Source: Takakia lepidozioides (lineage: Eukaryota; Plantae; Bryophyta). From it: 64,000 nucleotides of DNA. The DNA lies in assembly GCA_030704615.1 (NCBI GenBank), contig CM060732.1:10354001-10418000 (forward strand). Direction: 5' to 3'. The notes beneath the pieces were generated by a model. The model did not search any database. It saw only the letters and a program-made list of their open reading frames with translations, and was not told where the DNA came from. Positions 3,001-62,116 of this stretch are shown piece by piece (positions within the stretch are counted from its first letter, which is position 1; the number at the start of each line of letters is the position of its first letter). Position numbers and translations under genes: made by a program.

Positions 3001-5408
3001 ACGTAGATGCGCTAAGCAGGTATCCAGTGGGACCAGCAGAGGAAACCGAGGAAATCGAGGTATACTCTACTTCTTTATACAAACAGAAAAGGGAAGGAAG
3101 GAAGAGGGATGGAGCCTATCTTCTTAAACTAGAGTGGGATAGGGGTGCCATCAAGGCTTATCTATTTCAATTTCAGGAGGGTAAGAAGGAGTTGAGAGAA
3201 GAGGCTCATCGGCAAGTGGGGTATAGCAGTGAAAGAGGGGAAATGATCTGCAAAAGAGAAGAGTACTATGCATGTGTGTGGGGTCTTTGGCATTTCAAAA
3301 AAACACTGTTGGGAAGTCATTTTTCTTTAGAAACAGATCTGGACCCATATTGGTGGCTGTACTCAGAGTACCACATAGGAATAGATTTGCTTGGTGACTT
3401 TTCATTTGAGTTCGTTCCTAGAATAGATAGCTCTTACACAGGTGGAAAGTTGACCAAGGCTCATGGTGTATTGAAAGGAGGACTGAAACCAGGTACAATG
3501 CCAAATGGGGAGGAAAAAAAGGTGACTTTTGCTGCACAGACTTTGGCTGCCAATAAACAAGGAAAGGGAATTGATCAATCAAGTCATGTCAATCTGGTCA
3601 GGAAGGGTATTTGGAAAGGCATGGGTGCAGGAAAAAGGGAGGACCCTGCAATCAACAACAAAGAAGAGGAAGATCTGATGGCCTTTTGTCCCACCATCTA
3701 TGTAATTACCCGAGGATCTTATGCTCGTGATCAGGAGCCAAGCAAGGTACAGCCAGCTGGCAAAATTGTGAAGGAACGATCAAACGATGAAGAGGGAAGC
3801 TTGCAAGAAACACCATTCCTTCAACAATCTACAAGCACAGAAACAACAAGAAAAACTCGGGGGACTTCCTCGTCAGAAGGGCCAGTTGAAGAGAACATGG
3901 GGGGTGAGTGTTCCACCAAGACATTTTATGCTTCAGACAGTAATGGGCCACATTGTTCCGAACAAGACACTTCCTCTTATGACAGGGATGATAAAGGGGA
4001 CTGGGTGCCATGGAGCACACCCACCAAGGCCACACAGATGTCACTATTGCGCGAAGCTGAAAGATGGGGGAAAAGGTCTCTCATCAGCTCTGACAGTCAT
4101 ACAGTGGCTGTTAAGGAGGAAAAGCAACCTGATGTACTTGATGATGTGGAAGTTATGCATCTCTTATGTTTTGGAGAAGTCAATGACTATCTGACGAAGG
4201 AGGAGAGCAAAAGAGCCATCAGGAGGGCAAGGCAGTACTCCTATCTCAAGGGTGAGGTCTACTTTGAGGGAAGGGTGGTTCCACCAAAAACGGACAGAGA
4301 GGCAATAATCACTGAAGTGCATAAGGCCACGGGCCATTTTGGAGTCCGAAGAACACAAGAGGAGATATGCCGACGGTATTTCTGGCATGACAGAACAAAA
4401 CTCATCAGGCAAGTACTCAAAGGCTGTGGCGAATGTCAGATGGCTAAACAGGACAGGGTGTTGCGCTCAGGTAGCTCAAAACTGCACAGTATTCCAGTAG
4501 TGGATCTGTTTTTCAGAGTTGCAATTGACACGGCAGGACCATTGCCTATAACCAGCAGGGGAAACCAATACTTTCTAGTGGCAATAGATCACTTTTCAAA
4601 ATGGATAGAGGCTGCACCAGTGGCAGATCATACAGCAGCACTTACTGCCCGCTTTCTAGTGGAAGAAGTGATTGACAGGTATAGCTGCCCACATACGTTG
4701 CTCACTGACAATGGCACGGAGTGGGGAGGTGAGTTTGAAGATGCATGCCGCGAATACGGTATAAGGAGGGAGCATAGCGCCCCCTACTGGCCTCAGTGTA
4801 ATGGTATGGTGGAAAGGGTCATTAAGTCTCTCAAACAGAGCATCACCACCTTAGGAGTTGGAAACAACACTGAGTGGGATCAGAATCTCTATAAAGCCCT
4901 GTTTGGTTACAGAATGGGTGTCCATGCTTCAACTGGATTCTCACCTTTTCAGGTACTTACTGGTAGAATTCCAAGGCTGGGAATTGACAACAGGTTGCAT
5001 TTTCTTACAGCACCAGTAAATTTTGATGGATCTGTAGCAGAGGTCACACTTATGATGCAGCAGAAAATCCAGCTTCTCACCCAGATGAGGGCAAAGCTGC
5101 TAAAGAGTGTGAAGAAAGGGCAGCGTCAACAGGCAAGAGATTATGAAAGAAGGCATCAAACAGGGCATACCTATTGCAAGTTGATGGAGAACAGCAAGGT
5201 AATGATGTTGAGACCTGGAAAGAGGTCTTCCATGACATCTCCATGGGAGGGACCCTATGACTTTTTGGGGTACAAGGATGCAGGAAGCACCACCAAAACT
5301 GGAGAAGCTGCACGAAGATGCAGGCTGAGAGATGGAGCAGACAAGGAATGGGTAAGAAGTAGGAGGGATTTAAAACCCTTCATAACACCAATAGGTGATC
5401 AGCCATGA
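3..5408 (+). CDS. Gag-Pol polyprotein: CCHC knuckles, aspartic protease, RT, RNase H, degenerate second RNase H, integrase (frame open from window start)
   Basis: CDKCHRFGHSTEMC and CNFCKLLGHTESEC; IDTGA; LDLQSGFWQI...FVDD; DVDWS...EGECYAL...TDHKPL; HKATGH...CGEC; IDTAGP...TDNG...NGMVER; PR-RT-RH-INT order. Confidence 0.95.
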   Translation, partial: GHIAAYCPEGRTPAKCDKCHRFGHSTEMCGVRCNFCKLLGHTESECSRKLDQTMMGTPGTNFVDVFYDDEDDVLAEMTNLMSQNSINEVRLPRTRIPVQNPIVEPTGSPERNSESSEQPSRTKSEIYPKNNFKTAIEGGTKSRILNHFYKGRISLSPMDLIMTVPGELDKLKGLVKVVERAMVQQRETTHSVEVVKDVPKPLYSAHAEPTISYAYTGKVKALHVMITMGDYQVLGQIDTGAMLSVISASTVRDLGLMGSVITSKDVNYRVASGALETAMGRLEDIKVKVGELTNRLSFMVVNTDTYHMLLGLDFLKKFGAVVDTEAETIRVRYGPGKDFAHFPLHTINYNEPAVTKMACHRGVESRVRYAGSTSAGNVLTLTSDEQYLGLWEKKRKPEEEYEDTEEGSSGSDTSKSDKDEEMGSSEESEEVDTVLKDVEEIIDDVSLGEDLFEDQGMSELLQEETQRSMAAAIIQEAHQKAWDGELGNNNVEIEDDFHDWNQVVTQEERQRVANSVGQVEGMSLEPSQEEEMESRWRSLKSRLHINPELAPEQRKELEQELKANQECFALSKADLGYCSEVEHTIDTQGFPPCRSRPSRLSEWEENEVQGQIETLISQGKMRESSSEWSCPVTLPPKKDGSKRFCGDFRPVNRLTRRDSYPMPLIQDVLNQLGKAKWFSALDLQSGFWQIKMDDRDISKTAVITKKGLYEWLVMPFGLKNATATFQRTMNRVLKEEIKDCAKVFVDDVNIHSKDWGDHVGHIKRVLRKVRKANLRLNPDKCYFANLQLVFLGHVVSEEGTWPDPDKIAAIERFPLPKNHTALKSYLGMTGYYRPYVKGYAGVAVPLFTLTKKDVKFEWSAEAQNAFSALQVKLVTAPILARPDFSRPFVLDVDWSIKGVGAVLSQKEYKKERVIAYASKVLSDAQRKYHPMEGECYALVWGVLHFRQYLYGTPFVIRTDHKPLEWLATVSDAYGRRGRWIMMLQDFEFKIVHRAGARHANVDALSRYPVGPAEETEEIEVYSTSLYKQKREGRKRDGAYLLKLEWDRGAIKAYLFQFQEGKKELREEAHRQVGYSSERGEMICKREEYYACVWGLWHFKKTLLGSHFSLETDLDPYWWLYSEYHIGIDLLGDFSFEFVPRIDSSYTGGKLTKAHGVLKGGLKPGTMPNGEEKKVTFAAQTLAANKQGKGIDQSSHVNLVRKGIWKGMGAGKREDPAINNKEEEDLMAFCPTIYVITRGSYARDQEPSKVQPAGKIVKERSNDEEGSLQETPFLQQSTSTETTRKTRGTSSSEGPVEENMGGECSTKTFYASDSNGPHCSEQDTSSYDRDDKGDWVPWSTPTKATQMSLLREAERWGKRSLISSDSHTVAVKEEKQPDVLDDVEVMHLLCFGEVNDYLTKEESKRAIRRARQYSYLKGEVYFEGRVVPPKTDREAIITEVHKATGHFGVRRTQEEICRRYFWHDRTKLIRQVLKGCGECQMAKQDRVLRSGSSKLHSIPVVDLFFRVAIDTAGPLPITSRGNQYFLVAIDHFSKWIEAAPVADHTAALTARFLVEEVIDRYSCPHTLLTDNGTEWGGEFEDACREYGIRREHSAPYWPQCNGMVERVIKSLKQSITTLGVGNNTEWDQNLYKALFGYRMGVHASTGFSPFQVLTGRIPRLGIDNRLHFLTAPVNFDGSVAEVTLMMQQKIQLLTQMRAKLLKSVKKGQRQQARDYERRHQTGHTYCKLMENSKVMMLRPGKRSSMTSPWEGPYDFLGYKDAGSTTKTGEAARRCRLRDGADKEWVRSRRDLKPFITPIGDQP

Positions 5409-7607: not shown

Positions 7608-9118
7608 AGGCTCTGATATATCTGGTGAACAAACCTTTGATAAGTGGAAGGATAGCAAGGTGGTTAATAATCTTGCATGAGTTTGAGTTCGAAGTTGTTT
7701 ACAAGCTAGGCCGTTTGCATCTTGTGGCAGATCACTTGTCACGCCTATCAACAGGAGAGCCCGCCACAGGGGTAGATGACCAATTACCTGATGCGAGTTT
7801 ATTTGCGGTGGAGGTGTAGGGAAGTGCAGATGACTGGTTAGATTAGCAGTGGCCAATCAGATACTACCTTACTCATGGTCAGTGCCCACCTAGTTATGGA
7901 AAGGAGCAGAGGAAGAGAATCGCTATCAAGGCTTTACCTTATACTATGGTAGGGGGCAGAATGTATAAGCTAGGACCTGATGGAGTACTTAAACGATGCT
8001 TGTACCACCATGAAGTAAATAAAGTTTTGGAGGAAGTTCATAAAGGAGTGGCTGGAGGTCATTTTGGAGAAGAGACTATCAGTAGGAAGATACTACTTGC
8101 AGGTTACTGGTGGCCTACTTTGTTCAAAGATGTACACAAGTATTGTCAGAGTTGTGATGAGTGTCAGAGGCTAGGACCATTGCAGAGATCTGGGAAAATG
8201 GCTATGCATCATGCGATGCCTACTGAACCATTTCAGAAATGGGGACTAGACTTTGTTGGACCAATTAACCCACCAGCCAAGAATACACAGAACAAGTATA
8301 TAATCATAGCCACTGATTATACTACAAAGTGGGTGGAAGCTAAAGCTCTGAGGGACAACACAGCTAAGTCCACAGCAAGGTTCCTGTATGAGAACATACT
8401 CACACGATTTGGCTGTCCCCTGGAATTTATCAGTGACCAGGGAAGTCACTTCATTAATGAGACCATTGAACTCTTGACTAAAGAGTTCATGATTGTGCAT
8501 AGGAAGAGTACAACATATTACCCACAGGGTAATGGGCAGGCAGAGGCTACCAACAAAATACTATGTACTATCTTGGCTAAGATAGTCAATGCAAACAGAA
8601 CAGATTGGGATACAAAGCTGCTGACAGCTTTGTGGTCATACAAGACTTCATATAAAGTCACCACTAAGTATACACCATTCCAATTAGTTTATGGTATGGA
8701 AGCTTTACTTCCAGTGGAATTCTTGTTACCTACCATGAGAACTGAATGGGGAAGGAGAATGGAATTGGAAGATTCAATTAAGGTCAGGAAACATGAATTA
8801 TACCATGTGGAAGAAGTACGTGCTGATGCAGCTGATAACATGATCAGAATTCAGATGAAGAGGAAGGATCGGTTTGATGAAGGTAAATTAAAGACTTTTA
8901 AGACGGGAGATTTGGTTCTGTGGTTGCAAAAGAAGGGGAAGATTAAGGCTTCTAAGCTTAAATCACCATGGAAAGGACCTTATGTCATACAGAAGATGTA
9001 TGATAACAACACCGCAATGTTACAAACCATTAACAAAGAGATGCTGGGAAGAGTCAATGCCAATAAATTGAAGGGATACAGTGGTATGACTGGTCCTTGC
9101 ATCATCGGCAGTTTATGA
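7608..9118 (+). pseudogene. pol 3' part (RNase H end and integrase) of copy 2A
   Basis: [13 protein letters not shown]; HKGVAGGH...CDEC; WGLDFVGP...SDQGSHF...NGQAE; in-frame TAG stops near 7817 and 7845. Confidence 0.9.
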
Positions 9119-9119
9119 T

Positions 9120-12100
9120 TCAATTTCTTCATAACTTTGAGCCTCGGACAGGAGTTACCCAAGTGAGGGGAGTAAATATAGAAATTACTCCCCAGTGCCT
9201 GCAGCAAACTTGAGGTTACGCTTGTACCAAAGCCGAGTACCCAGGGCTCAGAGAAGTTGGCCAAATATCGAACGTTCTGTTTGCCATGAAACATAACCAA
9301 CAGTATTTGAGTAGGTCATTCACAGAGGAAATCCTGAAAGCTTTGAGGGGAGAGGATATAGCTTGGGCGGAGTTAATGTACAATGGTCTGGTGGACGAGA
9401 TGAAGAGGTTACAGGGCACTGCTGCTAAGTCTCCGATCATTGTGTCTGTTCCAGTCATTGCCCAAATCATTCTTGATTCTTGCATAGTTGATACTCGGGA
9501 ACGTAAGGAGATGAGAGTGTTTGAGGCAGGAACCATTGCAATTGAAGAGCGGGGCTCTTCACATAGTGAGGGTGGATTGGCAGGGCAACACCAGTCTAAA
9601 AGACAGAAGCGGGGTATGACTGTAATGGCGGATCCACTGGCTTCACGGAAACCGCATGATGATGTTTCCCAAGCTCTTGTGTAGGATGGGGCACAACAGC
9701 ACAGAAGGCTGTTATTATTGGAAGCACGGCCTTCGGAGAGGGAAGAAGAAGTCAATTCAATACCACAGCCACCACAGCTAGTTGACTCAGTTGTCTTAGA
9801 GGTTCCACAGTTAGAGTATGCTGTGACACAACCCCAAATTGCTTTGGACGGTGAAAGGTTGGACATTCCCATAAAGAGCAGGTCGTGGCTGAAATTGAGA
9901 AGGGTGACCTTCTCTACAAAAACTCTGGCTTGGTAAGGGAATCAGTGGTTCTAGAGGTGCAGCGGTTGTCAAGGGAAAACCCTATTGTGCATGTAATACC
10001 CACACCTGTGACGGAGGTACCAGGGGTAGAGTATCAGGACACTGTAACACTTGTGGAGGATGAGGTGGTTCAGGAAGATAATCTGGTGGGGCAATGGCCT
10101 GAATGGTTGGTGAGGCATCACATTGTGGAGGATCAGGGAGAACAGCAGCAAGTTCACCATGATGACCCTCGACATGCCATGCTTATGAGTTCCATAAGCA
10201 GGACACTTAATTTGTTGGGCACTTATGTGAAATCCCATGTTCCATCTACCCAATTGGCAGCTTTGAGGGAAGAACTCAGGAAAGAGTTTGAGGCTCGAAT
10301 TGCCACAAAGTGTGCTAACAAGGTAGATGAGGAGGTCAATCTCAAGTTACAGCAAGAGTTGGAGGACACAAAGGCTGCTTTGCAGTTGGCCAAGGGACAT
10401 TTGATTGAAGCAGGCCTCGAGAAGGACCAGTTGCATGAAGCACATGAGCAAAAGTTAAACCAAATGCAGGTGAAGCATGAGGGCAAGTTGCAAGAAGTGA
10501 ATGTACTACATACAGAGTTGGAGGCAGTATATGAGAAGATGACCATACAATGTGCTACACTCACAACTACTCTTGAGCAAACTGCATTAGAAGTTAACAG
10601 ACAAGGGGAGGGATGTATGATGGTAGAAGCTGAGATAATAAAGCAAGCAAAACTCATTGTTGATATGAAGAATACAATCTGTCGCAATGAGAATACTTTC
10701 AAACAATATAGACAGGTTGAGGCTGACCAGGAGAGGTACATCCTGGAGTTGCAACAAACAGTCATGGTCAATAGAAATGAACTCTCTGTGGCTAACAAAG
10801 CTTGGAAGGAAGCCAATAATCTGGTTGCTGCTTATGCGGGTCTGGTTGAACCTCATGCAAAGCGCATGGAGGCTTTACAGCAGCAGTTAGATGTGTACAG
10901 ACTCACGGAGGAGCAGACTCTCAGGGGTGCCACTCACGACTTGGTGGATAACCACCTTACGCAGGTCTGGTTAGCACAAGGGCCGGTAGAAGGCAAAGCA
11001 CCACGGAAACTCACCCATAACGAGATGAATGAGGTGGTAGGTGCAAAACATTGCCACAACTACTATAGACAATGTCTATAGTAGAATAACAGAGCTACAG
11101 GAGGACGTGGAAGGCCTGCAGACTCAAGTGGATGACCTGAGTTCAAATATTGACAAGAGAGTCTTTGTTCCTGAGGAGCAGCTGATGGCTACTTATTTAC
11201 ATGCCAGGACTCTAATTTTTCAATCTTCTTCGCAGGGGGTGCAGGAGATGCCGGTACAGGAGATGCCAGTGGTAGAAGGGCCAGTGGTACCAATACCACA
11301 GCAGGCGGCTGTGCAGGTAACTTACCCTGTTGTTACTACAGCCACACCACAGCCTGAGGTATGGGGGGATGCTGCTTTTAACCCACCTAAGACTCCTGCT
11401 GCACGGGAGTACAGTCGGGCTATGATTATGCCCTTCAACAAAATTCCCATTGTGTTGGATTTGGCTTGGAAGGAATTTAGTCCTCCGCAGTCGTTGGCAC
11501 ATTACTACCAGATCATACGCATTTGGTTGCCTGTGGCAACTCGGACTAAGGTTCTTCCGAACAATCGACCCATTGAGGATCATCACTTTGCCAGGTACTG
11601 GTTTGAGGCAGGTACCATGCTGAAGGAATTAATTGCCTTCCAGGTTGTACATGGGTACATCTATACCAAGACCAATGAGGTATCTAGTATTGTCCTGGGC
11701 TGTGGATTATATTATGCTGCTTGTTTTCTGGCACGCTATCACATTGAGCAGCAAAAGATGCAATCACAATTTCTGAGTTATTCCAATGGGGATCATTGGG
11801 TCTTACCTTCAGTGCCACCTCATATGTACCTATATGATGCAAAAGTTATGATGCAGAAGGATTCCCAACTTCGTTCATGGTTTAATTCGGCTTGGAACAA
11901 TTTGACAACACAGAAATTCGGCCCTGAGGATATTTTCTTTAAGGGACATGAAGCCTGGACATACTTACACTGTTCCAAAGTCATTGGCACACCTCTCACT
12001 TATACGGATAAGGAGTTCAGGGTGTTCACTAATTTTGCTTGCAAGCGCTTACAGCAAGTTGTACAGTTTAAACTTCCAGACATGGTGGGACCACATTGTA

Positions 12101-25400: not shown

Positions 25401-28400
25401 GAGGAGTCAGAGAGTATGACTGGAGAGGGAGGACTGGATGAGGAGCAGGAAGCTACCCTATTTGCTGCACACCCAGAATGGGAGCAGGTTGCGGAGATGC
25501 GGCTGGAAAGCCTAAGTTGTTTAAGAGGTATCTGCTGTGGTGTAGTGTGCAACACCAATTGAAGAGGAAACCAGCAGTTACCCACCACATTTCTATGAAG
25601 AAAAGGAGGGAGAGATAGAAATCCTAGAAGAACCAGCCACTGTGAGCTTAAAGGATGAAGTGGTGACTGGTTGGACAATCACAGCTGATGAGCAGGTGAG
25701 AGAAGTAAATGTGGGAACTCAGGAGGAACCGAGAATGGTGAAAGTAGGAGCTGATTTGGAGCCGGAATTCTTCGAAGAAGCTAAAAGCTTGTTCATCAAA
25801 TACAGAGATGTATTTGCTTGGAGCTATGAGGATCTAAAAGGGATACCACCTGAAGTCTGTCAGCATAAGATTGAACTGGAACCAGGGTCAGTAATCAAGC
25901 AGGCGAGGTAGAATGAATCCCAACTACGCACAGAAGGTTGGAGAAGAGATAAAGAAGTTGGCTGAGGCTAAGTTTATATACCCAATAGAGTATACAACTT
26001 GGTTGTCACCCATTGTTATAGTTCCAAAGAAGAATGGCAAACTAAGAGTATGTGTGAACTATAAGAAGCTGAATGCTTGTACGAAGAAAGATCCTTTCCC
26101 TTTGCCATTCACAGAAGCAGTATTAGACACTGTGGCAGGCCATGAGATGTACTCATTCATGGATGGCTTCAGTGGTTATAATCAAGTGCAAGTGGCAGAA
26201 GAAGACCAAGGGAAAACAGCTTTCATCACAGACTGGGGGCTTATGCATACAAAGTCATGCCCTTTGGACTTTGTAATGCACCAGCGACCTTTCAGAGAGT
26301 GATAAGTGAATCTTTTCATGAGTATCTGGATGATTTCATGCAGGTGTTTTTGGATGATTTCAGTGTGTACAGCTCTAAGAATGAGCACTTGCATAAATTG
26401 GAGTTATGCCTGGCCAGATGCAGGATGAGAGGTCTGGGCTTGAATCCAGAGAAGTGTACTTTCTGTGTGAACTCAGGGGTGCTTCTGGGACACATTGTGT
26501 GTAAGAAGGGACTTCTTGTGGATCCCAGGAAGACAGAGTCCATTAAAGTCTCTCCACCACCAGTGAATGTTAAGAGTTTAAGGAGATTCCTTGGGCAAAC
26601 CAGTTATTACAGAAGATTTGTCAAAAGGTATGCACAAATAGCAGCACCATTGAGCAAGCTTCTGAAGAAAGATGCAGTGTTTGCCTGGACAGCTGAATGT
26701 CAACAGGCGTTTGAGGAACTTACACTGTCAGTAACAACTACACCTGTGCTGATTAACCCTCACTGGCATGTAGTATTTCATGTTCACTGCGATGCATCAG
26801 GAGAAGCGTTGGGTGCGGTGTTAGCCCAGAATGTTACAGGGAATATAGATTCACCTGTGTACTATGCTAGCCGGTTGATGAACAGTGCTGAGAGGAACTA
26901 TAGTACAACGGAAAGAGAAGCATTGGCAATGATTTATGCAGTCAAGAAATTCAGGCATTACCTATTGGAAGAAAGTTTATGTTTTATGTGGATCACCAGG
27001 CTCTGATATATCTGGTGAACAAACCTTTGATAAGTGGAAGGATAGCGAGGTGGTTAATAATCTTGCATGAGTTTGAGTTCGAGGTTATTTACAAGCCTGG
27101 CCGTTTGCATCTTGTGGCAGATCATTTGTCACGACTAACAACAGGAGAGGCCGCCACAGGAGTGGACGATCAGTTACCTGATGCGAGTTTATTTGTAATG
27201 GAGGTGCAAGGAAGTGCAGATGAATGGTTAGATTGGCAGTGGCCAATCAGATACTACCTTGCTCATGGTCAGTGCCCACCTAGTTATGGTAAGGAGCAGA
27301 GGAAGAGAATTGCTATCAAGCTTTACCTTATACTATGGTAGGAAGCAGAATGTATAAGTTAGGACCTGATGGAGTACTAAAACGATGCTTGTACCACCAT
27401 GAAGTAAATAAAGTCTTGGAGGAAGTTCATAAAGGAGTGGCTGGAGGTCATTTTGGAGAAGAGACTACCAGTAGAAAGATACTACTCGCAGGATACTGGT
27501 GGCCTACTTTGTTCAAAGATGTACATGAGTATTGTCAGAAGTGTGATGAATGTCAGAGGCTAGGACCTTTTGCAGAGATCTGGAAGAATGGCCTTGCATC
27601 CTACAATGCCTACGGAACCATTTCAGAAATGGGGACTAGACTTTGTTGGACCAATTAATCCCACCATCCAAGAATACACGAAACAGGTACATAATTACAG
27701 CCACTGATTATACTACAAAGTGGGTGGAAGCTAAAGCTTTGAGGGACAACACAGCCAAGTCCACAGCAAGGTTCCTGTACGAGAACATACTTACACGATT
27801 TGGATGTCCCTTAGAATTTATCAGTGATCAAGGAAGTCACTTCATGAATGAGACCATTGAGTTATTGACTAAAGAGTTTATGATTGTGCATAGAAAGAGT
27901 ACAACATATTACCCACAGGGTAATGGGCAGGCAGAGGCTACCAACAAAATACTATGTACTATCTTGGCTAAGATAGTCAATGCAAACAGAACGGATTGGG
28001 ATACAAAGCTGCTGACAGCTTTGTGGTCATACAGGACTTCATATAAAGTCACCACTAAGTATACACCATTCCAATTAGTTTATGGTATGGAAGCCTTACT
28101 TCCAGTGGAATTCCTGTTACCTACCATGAGAACGGAGTGGGGAAAAAGAATGGAATTGCAAGACTCCATCAAGGTCAGGAAACATGAATTATACCATGTG
28201 GAAGAAGTACGTGCTGATGCAGCTGATAATATGACCAGAATTCAGATGAAGCGAAAGGAACAGTTTGATGAAGGCAAATTAAAGACTTTTAAGACGGGGG
28301 ATTTGGTTCTATGGTTGCAGAAGAAAGGAAAGATTCAAGCTTCTAAGCTTAAATCACCGTGGAAAGGACCTTATGTCATACAAAAGATGTATGATAACAA

Positions 28401-31400
28401 CACCGCCATGTTACAAACCATTAACAAAGAAATGCTGGGAAGAGTCAATGCAAATAAGTTGAAGGGGTACAGTGGTATCCATGACAAACCCCTGCAGCAT
28501 GATTTGCATGTTGAACCGCAAGAGCAGTCACGGGCTGCACCAGTGTTACGAACGGAGTATGGAACACTTGTCGCTAGGCCCAGCATATACGACCAGGGTG
28601 GGCAAAACAAACGTGACACAGCCTATCACAGCCTTATCACAGCCCATCACGACGTGACACAGCCTATCACAGCCCATCACGCAACACAGCCTATAACAAC
28701 ATGTCACAGCCTATCACAGCTTACCACAGTGCATCACAGCCTATCACAGGGTAACACAGTATGACACAGCCTGTCACAGCTCAACACAGCCTACTAAAGT
28801 TACACGATCCATAGAATCAGTGACAAGTGGACACATAAAACTTCAGGAAAATGGATGACGGAAGAGGAAACGGAAATTACTTTAAAAATAGACACGTGGA
28901 GGTCAGGGTGCGACACACAGCAGAGAATGAAGTGCAAGGACAGGTGTCAAAAAAAGAGGAAAAGAACGGCCGTCAAATGGGATGAAAGGCGGGCCCATTA
29001 ATGAATACGGAAAAAGGGAAACGGAACGAACGGCAAGTACAGAAAAGCTGAATTCATGTCGCATGTGTGATCCTAGTGGACTATCCAACAGGGAAAGTCC
29101 ACTAAAGAAGATAAAAGTTAAAATCCAGTCACAGCGATACAGCCAATAGAAAACCAGAGAAATGATCAAGAAAATGGAGGAAAATTGAGCGCAAGAGGCG
29201 GCGTCGTTCTGAGTAACGGGCGTCTCGACAGGACAGGCCATAAATGCTATAACTTGGAAACTATGGAGGAACTAACAGACTATACGCTCGCAATATTACT
29301 TACGCAGTGGCATAGACACGAAACGACAGAGCAGAGCTTTTCTCTTGAACAATGCTTGCAAGCCCCGCAGGCTTACAAGAGATTACCCATAGCTTTCTGC
29401 GGCAACCATACGTTTCTGCTTTGTGCACTACAGGCATTCCTGCAGTTGTTACAGCCAAAGCAGTTCTGTGAGTCTAAGATGAAGAGAGTGAGAGGAATGG
29501 AGGAAATCAGGGTGAAGAGCACCACAATTCTGCAGAAAAAACGATGGCTACCCCACAGGCGATAAAGATACTGGAGGAGCTGAGATTGGAAGGATTGCAA
29601 AGCTAGATTGGACACTACACCATAGACAGTACATGTTACAATTTTTGCAGAACTTTGAGCCAAGGACAGGAACAACAACGGTGAAGGGAGTTGAATTAAT
29701 GATTACTCCCCTATACCTCCAGCAATTGTTTCGATTGCCAGCAGGTCAGGTGCATGTGGGGAACACAGGGCAAGACTGCAAATAGGGGACTTATTCAAGA
29801 AGGGAGTTTCTTTAAAACTCAGGGTTATGCTTGTACCAAAGCTGTGTACCCAGGGTTAAAAGAGATAGGCCAGGTATTGAACGTTCTGATTGCCCTGAAA
29901 CAGAACCAACAATATTTGAGCAGATCCTTCACAGAGGAAATACTCAAAGGCCTGAAGGGACAAGAGGTACAATGGGCGGACATAATGTACAACGCACTGT
30001 AGAGGAGATGAAAAGATTACAAGGTACTACCGCAAAGTCTCCTATCATAGTGTCTGGCCCAATCATTGCTCAAATAATCCTTATTCTGGCATACTTAATG
30101 CACAAGAAAGGAAGGAAATGGGAGTGTTTGAGCCAGAAACAACTGCAATGGAAGAGCAAGGCTCTTCACACAGTGAGGGTGGACTAGCAGCACAACCCGA
30201 GACTAAGAGGCAGAGAAGGGGAAAGACTGTAGTGGCGGATCACTGGCTTCACGGATTCCGCATGATAATGTTTCCCAAGCTCATGACCAGGAAGGGGCAC
30301 AGCAGCACAAAAGAATGTTATTACTGGAAGCAGGACCTTCAGAGAGGGAGGAGGAAGTTACTTCTGCATCACAGCCAACACAGCCACTTGAACGACTTGT
30401 CACAAGGTCACAAGTTATCCATGCAGCTCAACCCGAAATAATTGATTTGGAAAGTGAAGGGATAGATATTCCAACTACAGAACAGATAGTGGCAGAAATA
30501 GAGAAAGGGGACCTTCTCTATGAATATTCTGGTCTGGTCAAGGAGACAGAAATCCCAGAGGTGCAACAGTTGCCCAAGGGAAATCCTGAGGTGCATATAA
30601 TGCACACACCTGTGTTGGAGGTACCACAGGCGGAAGGTCATGACACTGTAACACCGGTCATAGATGAAGTAGTTCAGGAAGAAAATCCGGTGGGACAATG
30701 GCCTGAATGGTTAGTGAGACATCATACTGTTGAAGATCGGGAGGAACAGCAGCAACCTCACCATGATGACCCTCAACAGGCAATGCTGATGAGTTCCATA
30801 GGCAGGACACTTAATTTGTTGGGGACTTATGTCAAATCCCATGTTCCAATTACCCAATTGACAGCCTTGAAAGAGAACTCAGGAAGGAGTTTGAGGCTCG
30901 ACTTGCCACTGAGTGTGCAAACAAGGTCGATGAAGAGGTCACTCTCAAGATGAAGCAGGACTTGGGCAATACAGAAATGGCTTTGCAATTGGCCAAGCAA
31001 CAATTGATTGAGGCAGGCCTCGCGCAAGACCAGTTGCACGAAGCACATAAGCAACAGCTATACCAAATGCAGGTGCAGCATGAAAGCAAGTTGCAAGAAC
31101 TGAATGCACTACATACGGAGTTGCAGACAGTGCATAACAGGATGGCGATACAATGTGCTACATTTACAACTATGCTTGACCAATCAACAAAAGAAATAAA
31201 CAGTCAAGCGGAAAAATGTACGAAGGCAGAAGAAGAGAATGTTGAGCAAATGAAGCTCATTGTCGATATGAAGAATACAATCTGTCGCCATGAAGATACT
31301 TTCAAGCAATACAGGCAGAGGGAAGCTGATCAAGAGAAACACATCGTGGAGTTGCAACAAACCATCGTGGCCAATAGAAATGAAATCGCGGTCAGTAACA

Positions 31401-49899: not shown

Positions 49900-50099
49900 C
49901 TTTTGTAAAATTGCAGCACTCCATTAGTCAGACAATGCCAAGGAATTAATAAACAAGATACTGGCTTTTGTAAAATTGGAGCACTCCATTAGTCAGACAA
50001 TATCAAGGAATTAACAAACAGGATACTGGCTTTTGTAAAATCGGAGCACTCCATTAGTCAGACAATGCCAAGGAATTAACAAACATGATATTGGCTTTT
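49900..50099. repeat. 3 x 65-bp tandem repeat upstream of the RAG1-like gene
   Basis: cttttgtaaaatt...ccattagtcagacaat...gatactgg at 49900, 49965 and 50030. Confidence 0.92.
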
Positions 50100-50125: not shown

Positions 50126-53100
50126 ATGGCATTGTCGGAGATTACGAATTTGCCGTTGAGGAAGTAGCCTCCTTATAAGGTGCAAGTTGCAATTGATGGA
50201 AAGCATGCACCGTTGATTTTGAGAGGTTGGTTACTAGACGAGCAGACACCGAAGTCAAACTTCCCTCAAAAATGGAGAGCGGGAGGTACAAACATAGATC
50301 TCTGGCTTGATTCATCCCTTTATCCCATTGACCCAGCTACAAGAGTACGTCCCAACATGAGTTCCATAAGAGACTTGCTTCAATTCTTGGGAGATGGAGA
50401 GGAGGGTTTTCTGGGTTATGTGAAACGCCTTCAAAGTGTTTGCTCAACCACTGTAGAGACCGCAAATTGGCGAATTCTATGCGAAGCTGTACAATAGCAA
50501 AGCGCAATAGAGATTCAAAAATTGAGGGATCAAAGTTCAGGTAGAACATTCCTCCCGTATGGAGATTGATTCATTGAGTGCTCAGATCATTACTATGGAA
50601 AACAACATAAGCAACAAGAGAGCTTCATATGAGAGTCAGTTGCATAGTCTGCAGTTACAAGTTCAAAATAAAGAGGAAGAAGTTCGTGTAATGGAGGGTG
50701 TTTGTGAAGCTCAATTGGAAGCTGTACGATCAATTCATGCGATGGAGTTAGATCAGATTGCGAGTTCCTACAAGTCCGAATTGAGATCCCTCATGTTGCA
50801 GCTCACAAGGTCTAGGGCAACATATACTCGCTTGGAGCAAAAACTGAGTAAGGTTCGCAACACCCCCTATGGACCTAGAAGCCAAATACGCCAGAGGAAA
50901 GAACAATCTTGCACCAAACGGTGGACAAGCCAAAGCGCTTAGAAGATTGGCGTGGAGTATCATTATGCCAGCTACTGCACGAAAAGTGCAACAAGAGAAC
51001 GCTGCATCAAACAGCAAGACAAGGCTTTGTGGCGATAGAAGTACCCAAGAAGAATCTGGAAAAGTCTTCGCTCAAATTCTATCAAGGACTGAGGTAGATT
51101 CGATGTTGCATGTGCCCATTTTTACTCACGTAGGTGCAAAAATGGCAAATCAATATCTCAATGAAATCGGCAAACAGGTTGGGCCCAGTGAGACTTTGGA
51201 GACCTGTGACAGAAATGGGATCACCCAAGCAGGTTACAATGCAATTTACAAGAAGTTTAAAGGTGGTGTAAAAGTTGCCTCCAAAGGGATGAGAGTAGGA
51301 TGTCTGCCCAATCCGCATCGAGTGTCGAAATTGCGCAAGGAATTGAACTCCAAGCTTCAGGATTTCGTAGGTGAATACTACCATTTGAACAACAGCCTTG
51401 AAGTTCCTAAAAAAGTCAAGAACGGTGAAAAGAATGAGGCTACTCGAGTGACACTATCCGAGCACAATTCTTTTTTCGCGGATGTGGAGCAGGTGCAGCG
51501 TACCATGGTCGAATTGTATGACATCACACTTGCCGGTAAGTCTTCTACATCGTGCACCTATAAATTATATGTTTTTAATCTTTAATTTTATATATTATTA
51601 GTATTGATTGCTTGATTTTGATTTTACAGAATTGAAGGGGAGCCCTCTACAGTTTGTCTTGAAGCTTGATGAGGCAGAAATCATTCATGCCCAAAAGCTG
51701 GAAAGAGTGAGTATTACCCTCATGAACCGTGCATTAGACCCATCCGTCACTCCGGATAGTGAAAAGTTTTTCAGTGTGCAAAGTGAGAGGGAGATTTGGC
51801 CTATAGCTTGTTTTCAAGTGGCAAAGGAGAACACATAGGTTCTAAAGTGGGTGTTCCAACAAACCAAACTTCCTTCGTTAATTCAAGCCCAAGAAGATGG
51901 GCAACGTCTTCACGTCCCGGGTTTTGGTGATTACAAGGTAGAGTGGCATATGGCAGCCGACATGAAGACAATAAAGGCCATGTTTGGTTTGAAGGGAGGT
52001 GCAAATAGTTTGCATTCTTGCATTTATTGCATGCAGGAGAGAGTCAAGTCTGTAGAGGGGTCCATGAAGGATGCCGCCGTTGCTATTAATAAGCGTTCCC
52101 ATACATGGAATGGAGGCTTATTTGCCCAAAACATTACTGCCAAACCGGTGAGTGGGAGTTAGGGAAAAGATCGTTGGAAACCAGTGTTGCCGATCCCCAT
52201 TGAGAGAGTGCATATTTGCACTTTACATGCCATGAATAGGATCATTGAGAAAATGGTCCACCTCCATTTCATGTTCGCCTGGACCATTCGCGATAAGAAA
52301 TTACAAGAGTTAGCTATTGCTGACATGGAAAAAGTGTTGTCCAGCACTGGTGCGCATGGTGGTTTGGTTAAGATCATGAAAGATGATCAACTGTCTGGCA
52401 AACTGAGTAATATCCCCAACAAACCTTCGTTCAATGGCCCACATGCTGCCAAACTCTTTAATCCGAGTACTTTAGAGGGAGGCTCCGAAAAGTTGTATAT
52501 TGATGTGGTAAAGTCCGAGCACAACCACACGAAAGATGGGGCAGGTAGGAGAAATCGATTAGCATGTTGGGTTGCATTTGATAAGTTGCGCCCCTATCTT
52601 TTTGGCCTTACACTCACCAATGGACAAAAAGCTGAATATAAGAAATGCGTGGAGGAATTCGGACAAGCTTTCATCAAAAGTTGGGGGGAGGGTCCAGTTA
52701 CACACTATATTGTGAGTATCTACAACATCCCTTGATATTGATTGGAATGCTTATAGTAAAATTTTGCATTTCAATTATAGTACTTATAGATGACAATGCT
52801 AATTGTTCAAGTTGATTGGAATGCTAATTGTTTAAGTTGATAATTTGCAGCGGGTATTGGTCAAGCACACCCCGTGGTTTGTTGAAAAGTATAGAAGCCT
52901 ATCTGTCTGGTCATGTCAACGAATGGAGAACTCGCATCACGCGGCAAAAGCGGCATATCAGCGTCATACTCAACATGCTGGAACAAAATGCAAGAAAAGT
53001 CCTTTGGTACAGACCTATCAACACTGGTTTAGGATCCAACATAGGTTCAGAAACAAAAGCCTTCAATTGAATGTTGCCATTGATAGCCTTAGAGGTGAGG

Positions 53101-53435
53101 AGGCAATTCAGGCCCGACGTGCAACATCCTTAAACTCAAGCGCAGCAGCACACAGCGCTTTGTGGCGATCAAGATGCACTCTGGTTGGCAGTAGGTGGGT
53201 ACCAAACTCTGAAGAGCAAATTGTAGAAGAGCCGATTGAGGAATCAGCGGAGGAGCCAATTCCGGATTCCCAGGTAGGAGGTTCAAAGTTTGAACGTAGT
53301 CACCACTTCATGCGTCCCTATCTTATCCCTAAACTGCAATGGAACCAAGCCCCAGTTCCTGCAGGCCTTACTCATCGGAAAGGAATTAATTCTGTGGTTG
53401 TGGCTTGCCTCCACACCAAAGGAGTTAGCAAATGA
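50126..53435 (+). pseudogene. RAG1/Transib/Chapaev-like DDE transposase; introns 51536-51629 and 52712-52850; premature stops
   Basis: VLKLDE; AADMKTIKAMFGL...HSCIYC; ICTLHAMNR; FNGP; VTHYI|RVLVKHTP...SVWSCQRMENSH, parallel to RAG1 core motifs (YDEKLVREVEGL..CTLC, DALH, ITNYFHKTLAH..WASEGNES). Confidence 0.78.
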
Positions 53436-54816
53436 GCAAGGTAGACAGGGCAGACTCAGACTGAAAGCAAGGAAATTGCTCAACTAGTTATCCCATTGAC
53501 AACATCTCCATCAGACCATAGTTTGAGATCTGCCCTGTCTATAAAAGGTAAAGAATGGTGAAAAGAAGGAGGTTACTCAATAGGGCAGACTCAGACTTGC
53601 TTTGACTTCTCAGCAGATTGATTATTGAGGGCGGGCGGAGGCGAGACCGGGCAGATCTCAGCAGATTGGTTTCAGGTCATACTTGGGGCGGGATTTCTTT
53701 GATCGATACAGTCAGGGCGCCTTGAAGAGTGCAGTCTGTTGGCACCAGTCTGTTGATGGAGGTGAAGAGTGCAGCATGTTGACAGTGGATAATCGTAGGC
53801 GACCATGCACCTCATGAAAACGAATTTGAATCGGTGATTCGAAGCACCGCCGTGAAGTCGTGTTTAGGGTCGACTGCCTCTGTTCTGCTGGGGGCTCCTG
53901 TAAGTCTGTCAGACATGCTGCCATCATACAACGTATTATTAATGGATCTTCAGTTGAAGTGGACTAGTAGGGCTAGTGTGTTTCGTTACCCTACTCTCCA
54001 TGGACTTGATGATTACAGCATCTTAAGCAAAGGTCTTTCAGCACTTGACCACATGACAATAAACTGGAGGGAGGAGAGTAATGTTACCCTGGCTCTAGAG
54101 AGACAGTTTTCTTTGATGTGACCTTTACCCACCTTTTTAATGTTCAACCATGCAACTACTCGACTCCAACCTGTCATGTCATTGGCGCATTCAAACCCAA
54201 CTTGGCCCGGCATGCTCTAGGATCCCTGCCAAGCATGATTAGGAAAACACTGCTCGAAGGACAGCACCGCTCGAAAGAACCTCCGCTCTAAAAGAACCTT
54301 TCATCTCCTGATGCGCAGAACTGAGCCTAACTAGTATGAACCTGAAGCTGCAGCCGTTGCCGCATGCGCCACATCCTCTGCCCCACAGACATACTAAGCG
54401 CCTGGACTTGCTGCTCAGGGGGGGCGGGACAACATTCTCCCTCTCTAAAAAGTCCGCACACACTCTCCCTCTCTGTATTACGGTGTAAAATGGAAGCACG
54501 GATAACTTAGAGAAGCAAGACGTGCACCCAGCCAAGACCTAAACATCCATCCATTCAATCTCATCTGGAAAGTGCAACTTGACTAAACTGGAGCTTAAAA
54601 TCGCATTAAGCATTAAGTACAAAGAAAGTTACAAGTACTTTCCAAGAGTCCATCCTCTTTCTTTTCTATGTTTTGGTTAAGTACAAATAAAATCACAATG
54701 TCATTAATGGATCATTACAGCATTCTTGGTTACCATGGCATCCCTCAACGTCATATTAAGCAGAAGATCCTGGGTTCGAATTCTAAATATTATTTGCTCA
54801 ACAAAGGTAATAATTT

Positions 54817-55330
54817 TGGTCATACCCCCTTCTCCCATGATTGTCCCACTTAGCCACAAGGTCTAGGGTTCAAAACATCACATAACAAAGGTTAAAATGT
54901 CACCTAAAATGTCACATAATGTTATCCTAATGCTCCATAGCCCTAACTCTCAACCAACAAACATCGTACTATTCACATAACAAAGCCTTAAAATATCACC
55001 TAAAATGTCACATAATGTTATCCTAATGCTCCACAGCCCTAACTCTAGCCCTAACTCTAAGACTAAATGTCACCAAATGTTGCAGATGTCACCATTATCT
55101 TGTAGCCTTTGGTCATACCCCCTTCTCCCATGATTGTCCCACTTAGCCACAAGGTCTAGGGTTCAAAACATCACATAACAAAGGTTAAAATGTCACCTAA
55201 AATGTCACATAATGTTATCCTAATGCTCCATAGCCCTAACTCTAGCCCTAACTCTAAGACTAAATGTCACCAAATGTTGCAGATGTCACCATTATCTTGT
55301 AGCCCACGGACTAACCCTAACTCTAAGGCT
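54817..55330. repeat. Complex tandem duplication with ccctaactct (telomere-like) subunits
   Basis: Block ggtcataccccc...ccctaactct repeated at ~54817 and ~55108, with a partial internal copy at ~54973. Confidence 0.85.
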
Positions 55331-55341
55331 ACACATCAGGA

Positions 55342-56732
55342 TTAATTTGCCACAAGTCGTAGTCGTTTTGGAGGCAGCACATCGGCAGCTGTGTACTTCT
55401 TCTCATTTCTGATGTTTACCTGTCAACAAGAAACATGTAATTTTGTCAGAAGCTGTCATAACATTTGAAGCTGTGAATGGATTACCATTTCACATACCAA
55501 ATTCCACATACCTTTTTGGACTTGATCCCATCTTCATCCACCAAGATCGTGAAGTCCTCAGGAATGTCTGATCCAAAAGCAATCGCAATCTCATGTCGAA
55601 TGCTTGACATTGACCACTGTCGCCCAACCTCAATTTCTTGTTGTCTTGCTTCATATTCACAACATAAGTTGACCAGCTCCACAGACTGAACCTGATCCAT
55701 CGTCTCCCATTTGTTTTTGGATATCATGCGTTGCCGATTGAATTGAAATGTGGCATATAAAACAGATCGGCCAATGTGATATCTGAATCTCAGTGTTGAA
55801 CGATCGACAACACATCTAATGACATCTGCTCCAATGGTGATTTTTGTATCCCATCCACTATCCATCAGTGATTCCAACAGCTTCTCACATGGTTCTTTGA
55901 AAGTGAACATGGTATAGCTCTTAGAGATACTGATGGCCACGGAAAATAGATCTACCATTACTCCAATTGGCATAAACCATTGTAAGTGGGTTGATTTGCT
56001 TCATGTTCTGGGTTTCATAGACGATAAGAAATCAGACCGCAACTTAAGTCTGAAAGACTCACTGGTCGCCATGTCCGGTAATGGCCAAGCTGGGTCACTA
56101 AAACCAGGAAGAGGGATTGGCTGCACTGTTCCAAACTCGGATCTACCATTGCGTGGGGTGTAAAATGCATTGTAGAAGTACACATGATCGCGCAGAAGCT
56201 CCTTGTGCGTTCGATATCCACGGCAAGCCTCACCCACTTCGGCGTGCACCACATACAAAACGTCCATTATACTCTTCAGATCAATCCAATCTTCAAACGT
56301 GGAAAGGTGTAGGTCTGCAATAAAACCCCATCCTCATCATATAGTTGTTCCACTGTGCACAATACAAGGTGAACTTGATAGCAAATAATGTAAATTTATG
56401 AGGATCTTAGACAACTTACAATTGCAAGCGCCTCTGCCAAAAGTTGCATCTGGAGGCAAATCAAGTTGCCGTTGCATGTAAGCATGTTGAACACAGATTT
56501 TGGATACCACTGTGGATCCACCTTCGAAACGAAACTTCAGCACCTTCGCCTTGTACGCCCCCTCTGTTGTAGAAGTTCCGCCGTGCTTCAATGAATCTTT
56601 AGCATGATCGCCTCTTCTACCCGGCATCAATGCTACCCAAGCATTACTCTCCACCTTCATGGGAATCCAATTATCATTCTCGTCTTTCGAATTGAACAAG
56701 ATCACAGATCCTACTTCACTTCGTGGCCGCAT
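55342..56732 (-). pseudogene. BAH-like plus C-terminal ubiquitin-like domain gene; exons 56732-56420, 56314-55512, 55419-55342; one in-frame TGA at 56001-56003
   Basis: YKAKVLKF...VQHAY...NYLHLSTFEDWIDLKSIMDVLYV...YFYNAFY; C-terminal IEVGRQWSMSSIRHEI...FTIL...EKKYTAADVL; splices in frame. Confidence 0.68.
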
Positions 56733-58089
56733 TTTGTTTCGGATTCACAATTCCCTCTGTATCCCACCAAGAAATCAACTTACGATTTGGAATGAGATTT
56801 GGAACACGAGATTTGGATTTGCAGCTTTACTGCACTTGTTTGCTTAAGCAACAATTGCTAACTAGTACCTGTCAACCTACAAGTACAGAGGTAAATTGGG
56901 AGTCCACAAGCTGGAGTCTCTTGGGCATCAAATAAACTATTTTTCCCACTAAGTGGCCATACAAGTGGCCGCCTCACCCAACCTATGCTCCTGATATGTC
57001 TCTTGGATACCATTAGTTGGATTTAGCACAGGTCAGATTGGATATACTTCAAAGTACTGTATGAAAGGTTCAGCATTTGCTTTTGCAGGGTGGGGCAACT
57101 GGGTTCCTCCAATCCCAGGCTGTTGCAAAAATGATGTTTGAGCATTTTGCTGGACAACTTTGTAGGCTGGTCTGGTTTGACTTGCATACCCAAGTAGACT
57201 CTTATCCATGATGACCTTAGTTATGCAGCAATGATTTTTCTATCAAATTGCAGTGATTGCGACCTTGGAATTGGGAAAGGGAAATCCATTTTTGGGTAAT
57301 CTAGTTGCGAACCAGACCAGCTCAGCCCAGCTCAGTTCAGCCAGCCCAGCTATCACTTGATTTGTCTGTCAATTTGCAGTGATTGCGACATTGGAATTGG
57401 GAAAGATAAGTCATGTACTCTTAAAAAGAGACCTTCCTTCCCGAGTTTTTCAATCCTTACAACATCAGTTTATTTTATTGTCTCAGTTTATCAGATCACG
57501 AGCCCGAACATTGGAATACAACATTAAGGTAGATGCTGAAAGAGGATTATCACCTTCTTTCCGCAGTTTAGTCCAAGCTGCTTCAAGACTGGTAGTGAGC
57601 TGGTCAAACACAGCAGCTCTTGTTTTCAACACCCCACCTCTGAGCCCTGTCTACCCTGCTCATTTGCTAACTCCTTTGGTGTGGAGGCAAGCCACAGCTT
57701 AGTACAGACTCAATCATCTATAGCCTGCAAGAGCTCAAAGCTTTAACTTCTGAGTCTCTGGCTCTTAGTGGCAACCCCAGCAACCCCAGATTGACTTGGT
57801 AAGCAATGTTGTAGGTTGAATCCAAGCTCAATCCATATGAGCAACCCTCTAAGGCATACAGCCACCATACTGAAACTACGACACCTACAGTCAAACCATC
57901 AACAACATAGCCAAGAAAATGAAGATAGAAGGCAACTGCATTCCTTGTTCACCTAAGAGTGGCCTTGGCATCAGCAGCTAGAGTCCACAAGCGTGATTCG
58001 AAACGTTGCACACGCACTGCAAACGCACACAAACATGATGTGGTCGAGCTTCACCCCTTCCGGCCCCGTCATTTGCTCATAGGTCTCCA

Positions 58090-60150: not shown

Positions 60151-62116
60151 GCAATGCATTCCATTCCCCTGATTCCGGGAGCTACCCCGAGACGACAACA
60201 AGAGAGAAGGGTGAACCCCAACTTAGCACTGCTCATTAAAGCAGAGATTGAAAAACTGCTAGCCGCAAAAATTTATCTTCCCGGTGGAAACATCAGCATG
60301 GGTGTCTCTGATGGTGATCGTCCGAAAGAAGAATGGAGGCCTAAGGGTATGCATGGACTTCCGCCCCCTTAACAAGGTACCACACAAGGATCATTTTCCC
60401 TTGCCATTCATAGATACTTGGGTGGAAGAAGTAGCAGGGAAAGAGCTCTACTCTTTCATGGATGGATTTTCAGGGTACAATCAGGTGTTGATTGACCCAA
60501 AGGACGTGTTAAAAACCACCTTCATTTCACCATGGGGAACATTTGCCTATACAGGGATGCCCTTTGGCCTGTGCAATCTCCCCTGACATTTCAGAGGGTC
60601 GTGACGTATGCCTTCTCAAACATTGTGAAAAGGAATTTGGTCATCTTCTTAGATGACTTTTGTTGCAATGGCGATGCAAAAGATCACGTTGCAGCATTAC
60701 GGGAGTGCTTCATCCGGTGCAGGGAGAATGGGATTTCTCTCAACCCGATGAAGTGCGTGTTTGCAGTCACACATGGACTGCTACTGGGGCACATAGTGTC
60801 CAAAGATGGCATGGCGACAGATCCAGCAAAGGTGAGCGCCATAGTCAAATTTCCCGCACCAGAGACATCATCTAAGGTGAAAAGGTTCCTTGGCCACACA
60901 GGGTGGTATAGGAAATTTATGGACAAGTATGCAGCAGAGGCCTTACCTCTGACTCGATTATTGAAGAAGAACCAGGTATTTTCCTGGGATACAGGGTGTC
61001 AGGAGTCTTTTGAGACACTCAAGCAGCCCATGGTGTCCGCTCTCATTTTGGCAGCTCCCGACTGGAACAGGCCTTTCCATGTTTACATTGATGCTTCGGC
61101 GGTGGCCGTAAGCTGTGCCCTGTGCAAACCAGATGCTGATGGCCATGATCATCCGATATCCTTCGCTAGTCGACAGCTGACATTCGCCAAAACGAGGTAT
61201 AGCACCACGGAGCGGGAGGCTTTGGGAATGATTTTTGCCGTAAAGAAGTATCGACACTATTTGTTGGAGACACCTTTCACATTTTTTGTTGATCACATGG
61301 CATTACGATACCTGATCAACAAGCCCAATTTGACGGGGAGAATAGCCAGGTGGGTTATTCTGCTTCAGGAATTTGACTACAAGGTAGTCTACAAGCCCGG
61401 AAGGCTTAATGCTCAGGCCGATCACATTTCCCGATTATCGGAGAAAACGGAGACGAGCCTATTGACGATGATTTTCCGCACGCATTCTTGTTCTCCATAG
61501 AGACCGTCCCTCCATGGTATGAGCATATAGCTCAGTATTTGAGCACCCTGGAATTTCCCCCAGGATTGGATCGACACATGCGACGGAGGCTTCGACTGCG
61601 CAGCATGAAGTTTGCTCTTGTGGGAGGGCAACTTTATAGAAGGGGATTGGATGGACTCTTGAGGCGATGCGTCACCCCGGAGGAGGTTCCCCAGATTTTA
61701 GAGTCAGCCCATGATAGCATGTGCGGAGGACACTTTGCAGGGCGGCTCACGGTGGGCTCACGGTGCATAAGGCTTTAAGGGCATGATACTACTGGCCCTC
61801 CATGTTCAAAGATGCGCACATGCATGTGCAAAAATGCAACTCTTGTCAGAGGTACGCCAAGGGATAACAGGCTCAGAATGTCGTTAGTTCCCACTCTCCC
61901 CTTTGCTCCGTTTGAGAAGTGGGGGATCGACTATGTAGGGGAAGTGCACCCTGCATCGAGTCGACAAAATCGCTACGTCATTATAGCCACTGAGTATCTG
62001 ACCAAGTGGGCAGAAGCCAAAGTGGTTAAGAGGGCCAACGCATAGCCTCTTTCATTTATGAATCTATCATTTCCCGATTCGGATGCCCAAAAGAAATAGT
62101 GAGTGACAGAGGATCT
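60151..62116 (+). pseudogene. Gypsy non-chromovirus pol fragment (RT, RH, part of INT), truncated by insertions on both sides
   Basis: [33 protein letters not shown]; ends at SDRGS. Confidence 0.92.

Follow-up and report, generated by a model that had tools for sequence, protein, structure and literature searches.

The 64,000-nucleotide stretch of the genome of the moss Takakia lepidozioides analysed here (positions 10,354,001 to 10,418,000 of contig CM060732.1, assembly GCA_030704615.1; hereafter the window, in which positions are counted from the first letter) probably carries a decayed copy of a cut-and-paste transposon family widespread in mosses, in which a DDE transposase of the RAG1 fold faces a gene for a BAH-domain protein. 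An earlier reading of the window's letters (the original prediction) had described a RAG1/Transib-type transposase convergent with a chromatin-reader gene, in a layout like that of the ProtoRAG transposon. It is partly supported: right on architecture and fold, and unproven on strict Transib membership and on the function of the partner. The two genes form a unit, as the convergent pair is present in six loci and, in Ceratodon, is bounded by terminal inverted repeats. Note that all searches used single exons or open reading frames (ORFs) as references, and that folds were made on natural homologues retrieved by these searches.

The transposase of the window is a multi-exon pseudogene of the DDE type on the plus strand, spanning ~50168-53435 and read across several frames (Table 1). 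The D-D-E triad is present, and most members of the family alignment A3 share it in these columns; the catalytic glutamate was placed via the blastp pair formed by a window piece (tpE) and the homologue P0132, in which tpE aligns to residues 449-507 with 41% identity. All the motifs named when the gene was called RAG1/Transib-type are present, whereas the number of exons is at least four, not three. The frame opened by the ATG at 50126, formerly taken as the start, closes at a stop after 13 codons, and the original prediction included exon 1 only in part. The donor GT of exon 2 is predicted at 51536, and the intron 52712-52853 is the sole transposase intron confirmed by spliced contigs; its position after the VTHY motif is conserved in alignment A1. 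In-frame TAG codons at 51836-51838 and 52160-52162, an apparent frameshift near 50880-50900 (where a related locus, L009, has an uninterrupted ORF) and a single in-frame TGA in exon 2 of the partner gene (56003-56001) bear out that this copy is dead; a further TAG possibly interrupts the transposase at 50495-50497. The first zinc-binding histidine, which had been said to read arginine, is intact: the window reads R-V-H-I-C-T-L-H, the same as the family consensus H-x-C-x-x-H.

Table 1. Coordinates of the transposase, the partner gene and associated repeats in the window.
Feature	Position	Strand	Remarks
Transposase exon 1, conserved N-terminal region	50168..50497	+	tblastx 45-57% identity with L009, L010, L018, L019
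Transposase exon 2, coiled coil then pre-catalytic region	50559..51535	+	approximate, predicted ends; L009 reads the region in one frame
Transposase exon 3, catalytic core	~51630..52711	+	donor 52711/52712 confirmed by spliced contigs
KLDEAE (first catalytic D)	51662	+	exon 3
AADMK (second catalytic D)	51953	+	exon 3
CIYC	52019	+	exon 3
VHICTLH	52208	+	exon 3
VTHY	52697	+	exon 3
Transposase exon 4	52854..53435	+	conserved protein ends near 53262; ORF ends at 53435
QRMENSH (catalytic E)	52917	+	exon 4
228-bp stretch lacking in RNA-like paralogue contigs	53353..53580	none	includes 53399-53451, the left arm of the 53-nt inverted repeat
Tandem and direct repeats	54815..55350	none	in the space between both gene ends
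Partner exon 3, last ubiquitin-like strand and stop codon	55345..55419	-	tblastx 64-76% identity in all loci
Partner exon 2, BAH end, middle domain and most of the ubiquitin-like domain	55512..56314	-	profile and RNA-like joints
Partner exon 1, first two thirds of the BAH domain	56420..56732	-	joint 56314->56420 in two RNA-like runs
Right arm of the 53-nt inverted repeat	57644..57696	none	0.95 kb upstream of the partner ATG

The partner gene lies on the minus strand in three exons (56732-55345), and the gap between the ends of the two genes is ~1.9 kb. Joints of the GT..AG type in RNA-like contigs confirm both of its introns, the joint 55416->55509 being GT..AG on the minus strand with the cut shifted by +3. 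In alignment A4, the first intron of the window sits precisely at the boundary between two conserved motifs, ..CN and LY.S..DW. Searching with an exon 2 profile retrieves 120 proteins, among them intronless versions of 390-446 residues and 'hypothetical proteins' of Ceratodon purpureus from chromosomes U and V. One homologue, P0189, which is 41-57% identical to the window's three partner pieces, was folded with alignment A5 and gave a model of high predicted local confidence (pLDDT 92.7). Its residues 3-170 form a BAH beta-barrel, matched by Foldseek to BAHCC1 (E-value 9e-6) and TNRC18 (2e-5) and by VIA-align to EBS (Z 13.2), PBRM1 (13.1), ORC1b (13.1) and TNRC18 (13.0). Residues 171-312 make up a middle domain, and residues 313-396 form a beta-grasp closest to the UBX domain of PUX5 (Z 11.0, root-mean-square deviation (rmsd) 1.8), with RA, FERM-F0 and ubiquitin domains also matched at Z 9-10. 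Exons, gap and folds therefore agree with the convergent three-exon gene, about 2 kb away and encoding BAH and ubiquitin-like domains, that had been proposed. The Pfam BAH profile matches neither the window pieces nor the homologues P0017-P0022, and the fold of the P0189 model is not the six-bladed Kelch propeller of RAG2. Four positions conserved in alignment A5 (W/Y/F 59, H 80, Y 82 and W 111, P0189 numbering) sit, judging by motif, where the residues of an aromatic cage for a methylated lysine would be expected.

The tail-to-tail pair recurs in five loci besides the window: a JGI metagenome locus (L001, with 0.9 kb between the gene ends), Ceratodon chromosomes U (L010, ~0.4 kb) and V (L019), a second JGI locus recovered from many samples at 100% identity (L011-L017, 0.2 kb) and an ENA contig (L022, 0.2 kb). 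The BAH gene is thus linked to the transposase in other copies too. Protein identity between these loci is 54-65% for the transposase and 45-54% for the partner, so the association is old. The distance matrices of the two genes are correlated (r 0.81, p 0.003) when an outlier locus, L021, is included, and less so without it (r 0.50, p 0.058). The pair sits in a nest of Ty3/Gypsy elements, and a copy-specific 228-bp stretch and repeats separate the two genes, as might be expected if they were chance neighbours in a transposon-rich stretch; the same oriented pair at five further loci, drawn from three or more additional sources, refutes this explanation, to which we give practically no credence. 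Not every related locus holds both genes, L009 having a truncated transposase and no partner. As side observations, the L011 locus is represented by ~24 metagenome contigs, with ORFs of the CHAT domain upstream, and an ORF with a hAT-type C-terminal dimerisation motif at 5808-6071 of L001, 1.8 kb beyond the partner start, looks like a fragment of an unrelated transposon.

The limits of the mobile unit were obtained from Ceratodon chromosome U, on which L010 and L018 share blocks of 92% identity that stop at the same two points, the flanks beyond being unrelated. The ends so defined are inverted copies of 5'-CATTAG.A.AGGACTCGA.CC, and in L010 these terminal inverted repeats enclose an 8.7-kb unit holding both genes. 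L018 (8593-13427) is a deletion derivative of the L010 element with the same terminal repeats, in which the core of the transposase is lost while the partner and transposase exon 1 are kept; it looks like a non-autonomous derivative. The contigs L011-L017 could not serve for defining ends because they represent one locus at 100% identity. Comparison of copies thus yielded terminal repeats for L010 and L018 and no visible target-site duplication; in the window, the Ceratodon terminal repeat has no match with up to 4 mismatches, and inverted repeats between 45-50.9 kb and 56.7-61 kb are chance-size matches only. A 53-nt inverted repeat of 98% identity (Table 1) was considered as the termini of the window's element and rejected as unproven, having no outer duplication and a left arm inside the 228-bp stretch that the paralogue contigs do not contain. 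Its right arm may nevertheless mark an element end, though this is unproven; the end of the Ceratodon element lies at the same distance from its partner ATG.

The linkage could also mean that the BAH/ubiquitin-like gene is a captured host passenger, or a gene used by the host, rather than a transposition factor. In the second JGI locus (L011, 3227-7144), on both Ceratodon chromosomes (L019, L010) and in the ENA contig (L022), the partner has 0-1 in-frame stops and the adjacent transposase 2-10, a hint that the partner outlasts the transposase and, on this explanation, that selection acts on it independently; the longer-kept partner fits either a trans-acting factor of the family or host use. 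An intronless partner with no transposase in the surrounding sequence covered (P0205 in locus L020) and the listing of the partner as a gene in the Ceratodon annotation point the same way. Against a passenger stand the orientation and closeness kept in six loci at 45-65% protein identity, the correlated divergences of the two genes, and the position of the partner inside the terminal repeats and its retention in the derivative without the transposase core. The partner is, moreover, itself broken in the window, L001 and L018. We regard the passenger as improbable and retain the two-gene transposon.

The exon from the second catalytic aspartate to VTHY has many relatives at 47-66% identity, and its profile, searched against 1.84 billion representatives, retrieves 368 proteins, 57 of them below an E-value of 1e-30, most of the 368 being exon-sized ORFs. 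The homologues P0132 (585 residues) and P0111 have no introns and cover the complete triad; P0132 is matched by the window's first-aspartate piece (tpB, 8.7e-8), by its glutamate piece (tpE, 7e-8) and by the window exon-family profile (2e-17). The CxxC pair is absent from the intronless full-length homologues P0111, P0132 and P0117, in which D, D, E and HxCxxH are kept. No Pfam family reaches threshold for the window pieces of either gene, for ten long homologues or for 96 aligned members. The best weak match is RAG1 (PF12940, E 0.0032, in 2 of the 96 members), followed by DUF1258 (E 0.034, likewise in 2 of the 96), which falls on the window's piece with the second aspartate and CxxC. Profiles of hAT and CACTA, known plant superfamilies with which the transposase might have clustered, match neither its pieces nor its homologues.

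The affinity of the transposase appears at the level of fold. P0132, folded with alignment A3 (pLDDT 78.3, predicted TM-score (pTM) 0.76), has the architecture of the RAG1 core, namely a pre-RNase H region, an RNase H DDE domain with a Zn-binding insertion and a helical C-terminal domain. In Foldseek against the PDB, the top 49 matches are all RAG1, amphioxus RAGL or HzTransib (E 2e-11 to 5e-5, ~510 columns, TM-score (TM) ~0.5), and match 50 is Hermes (E 4e-4, TM 0.19). VIA-align gives the same ranking: RAG1 first (Z 21.8 over 405 residues, rmsd 3.6, with model residues 19-516 on RAG1 480-1008), then HzTransib (Z 20.2, 412 residues), BbRAGL (Z 19.6), the P element (Z 12.3) and Hermes (Z 8). 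Within the set of solved structures, the entire core of the family therefore resembles RAG1/Transib. By language-model similarity, the nearest named clusters of P0132 and of the moss-type protein P0023 are RAG1 families (0.95-0.96), and no Transposase_21 cluster is among their top 30 neighbours. Shape searches of the ESM Atlas give unnamed clusters from rotifers and Mucoromycota as the best matches (TM 0.70), with RAG1 clusters at TM 0.59-0.62. The Novosib superfamily, reportedly grouped with hAT, P and Kolobok by Yuan and Wessler in 2011, was rejected with moderate confidence on the basis of that grouping, the Z-score of the model being far higher with RAG1 (21.8) than with P (12.3) or hAT (8).

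Several observations weigh against a RAG1/Transib-related two-gene transposon. No hidden Markov model or Pfam profile ties the family to RAG1/Transib at significance, and phmmer and hmmsearch with the window pieces and profiles A1 and A3 did not find RAG1/Transib chains among PDB sequences. The ESM Atlas holds, at TM 0.61 over 449 residues, a cluster annotated with Transposase_21 (58%) and DUF1258 (19%). The two fold predictions come from homologues and not from the broken genes of the window, whose own element ends were not found. The Ceratodon ends start with CATTAG instead of a CAC heptamer (CACTATG-like), and neither L010 nor L018, two copies that are 8% diverged, is flanked by a direct repeat of 2-8 bp; from these two copies, the missing CAC start and target duplication count against strict membership in Transib. 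The pairing itself is not uniform, as both genes of L021 are on the same strand, 7.4 kb apart, and the intronless partner of L020 (P0205, 409 residues, 10001-11230) has no transposase nearby within the 10 kb upstream and 2.6 kb downstream that were covered. A 738-residue ORF beside this partner was considered as its transposase and rejected; it is unrelated to the family and has no Pfam family. Finally, the function ascribed to the partner is argued from analogy with other BAH proteins.

An alternative is that the transposase belongs to the CACTA/Mirage/Chapaev (CMC) assemblage, or forms a separate deep lineage equally far from CMC and Transib. On that view, it would look like RAG1 simply because RAG1 and Transib alone, among the members of a shared ancient fold, have solved structures, and the layout would be the usual CACTA-style plan of a transposase plus a second protein, with no parallel to RAG1-RAG2. 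The PDB contains no CACTA-type (CMC) structure, so its comparisons, and fold alone, cannot separate Transib from CMC; the Transposase_21/DUF1258 cluster is as close in shape as the RAG1 clusters, a weak DUF1258 match exists, and the ends start with CA and have no CAC heptamer. Conversely, Transposase_21 is matched by no window piece, long homologue or aligned member at E-values up to 10, named language-model neighbours are RAG1 families only, the best weak Pfam match is RAG1, and the ends are not CACTA, with no 2-3-bp duplication seen. We consider this alternative unlikely, though still of some weight. Overall, the label RAG1/Transib-type holds for the fold of the homologue, while sequence profiles stop short of it and a CACTA-type cluster is structurally as close; on our reading, the transposase represents a deep branch of the RAG1/Transib-like group, an affinity to CMC being kept as a minority view.

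Copies other than the one in the window were detected in sequencing contigs of the source organism, compared over 50800-56799 of the window. A DNA run provides 414 contigs of 90-100% identity across all of this interval, the intergenic space included. Two further runs, whose RNA nature is a guess, carry the joints 52711/52854, 56314/56420 and 55416/55509, which fit the predicted introns and are absent from the DNA run; spliced transcripts of close paralogues (~93-97% identical) therefore exist. At 51836, other copies and the RNA-like contigs read G, not T, so the TAG at this position is private to the window. With near-identical copies spliced in the same organism, the family may still be active there. 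One RNA-like contig, ~97% identical and spliced at 52711/52854, is without 51919-51999, the 81 nt encoding the second catalytic aspartate, and no GT..AG is found at the edges of this gap; one expressed paralogue may be catalytically disabled.

No second copy of the pair was found within the window. Its Ty3/Gypsy content includes an unbroken pol ORF of 1774 residues at 84-5408 (protease, reverse transcriptase, RNase H and integrase) and further fragments at 7946-9118, 26257-28764 and 60532-61500. Three 65-bp tandem units lie at 49900-50099, directly upstream of transposase exon 1, and a block of 136-bp and 133-bp direct repeats within the repeat region listed in Table 1 adjoins the 3' end of the partner.

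As presumed from its family, the transposase would bind the terminal inverted repeats of the element, excise it and insert it elsewhere; neither gene of the window copy can yield a full protein. In other proteins, BAH domains recognise nucleosomes or methylated histone tails, and an accessory, chromatin-linked role therefore appears the most likely one for the partner. By this analogy, we tentatively view the partner as a possible accessory factor that ties the transposase to the state of the chromatin, with the ubiquitin-like end as a candidate protein-docking module; it could guide insertion or limit activity. More speculatively, the family would be a living moss lineage of RAG1/Transib-related transposons that, independently of animal RAG1-RAG2, recruited a BAH histone-mark reader as obligate partner, by which cutting or insertion is tied to a chromatin state such as heterochromatin; in this full form we hold the proposal to be rather doubtful. 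That copies lie in a Gypsy nest and on sex chromosomes would fit a preference for heterochromatin, and is equally expected from passive accumulation.

A broad survey counted only 35 Transib transposases, mainly animal (10.1101/2021.09.26.461848), and a screen of 1007 plant genomes included Transib among the 17 superfamilies searched by Pfam profiles (PMC12973397). Pfam profiles as used in the latter screen do not detect the moss family. No paper describing this family, or a pairing of a RAG1-like transposase with a BAH gene, was found in the plant literature searched, outside which Repbase lay. If our reading is true, a multi-copy, spliced moss family, enclosed by terminal inverted repeats in Ceratodon, would widen the host range of the RAG1-type fold to land plants. 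Vertebrate V(D)J recombination goes back to RAG1-type transposases, which the surveys consulted record almost exclusively in animals (10.1101/2021.09.26.461848), and the pairing with a BAH protein would offer a second, independent opportunity to ask what brings RAG-like enzymes and chromatin readers together, one open to experiment in a tractable moss. In addition, the family may account for 'hypothetical' genes on the sex chromosomes of Ceratodon.

Of the known systems, ProtoRAG of amphioxus (6b40) is likewise bounded by terminal inverted repeats and made of two convergent genes with a RAG1-fold DDE transposase (BbRAGL, Z 19.6). The moss partner, with BAH and ubiquitin-like domains, is not a Kelch propeller, the host is a moss, the moss-type ends, as defined in Ceratodon, have no CAC heptamer or visible 5-bp duplication, and sequence similarity was not detected; 'ProtoRAG-like' thus applies to the convergent layout and not to these other traits. 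Transib (HzTransib of Helicoverpa zea; 6pqn, 6pqx) has the same core architecture, with a D-D-E triad and a Cys/His-rich insertion, in a single gene, whereas the moss family has a second gene and introns and misses the Pfam RAG1 threshold. CACTA (En/Spm) and other CMC elements resemble it as plant-type two-gene transposons with terminal inverted repeats, a CxxC/His-bearing DDE transposase and a comparable predicted fold (TM 0.61); they differ in that Transposase_21 is unmatched and the moss-type ends are not CACTA, and we take the moss partner to be unrelated to TnpA, the second CACTA protein. Chromoviruses, whose Ty3/Gypsy integrases carry a chromodomain thought to steer insertion, are also mobile elements with a chromatin-reader module. 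The likeness is functional only, the reader being fused to a retroviral-type integrase in chromoviruses and encoded by a separate gene of a DNA transposon in mosses. In vertebrate RAG1-RAG2, as in the moss family, an enzyme of RAG1-like fold (Z 21.8) is paired with a protein bearing a domain of the histone-reader type, RAG2 carrying a PHD finger as its histone reader where the moss counterpart has BAH. RAG is a domesticated recombinase, in contrast to the multi-copy mobile element of mosses, and both the reader domain and the rest of the moss partner are unrelated to RAG2, so that any functional likeness is convergent; if true, the moss family would be a convergent replay, in plants, of the logic that joins RAG1 to a chromatin-reading RAG2.

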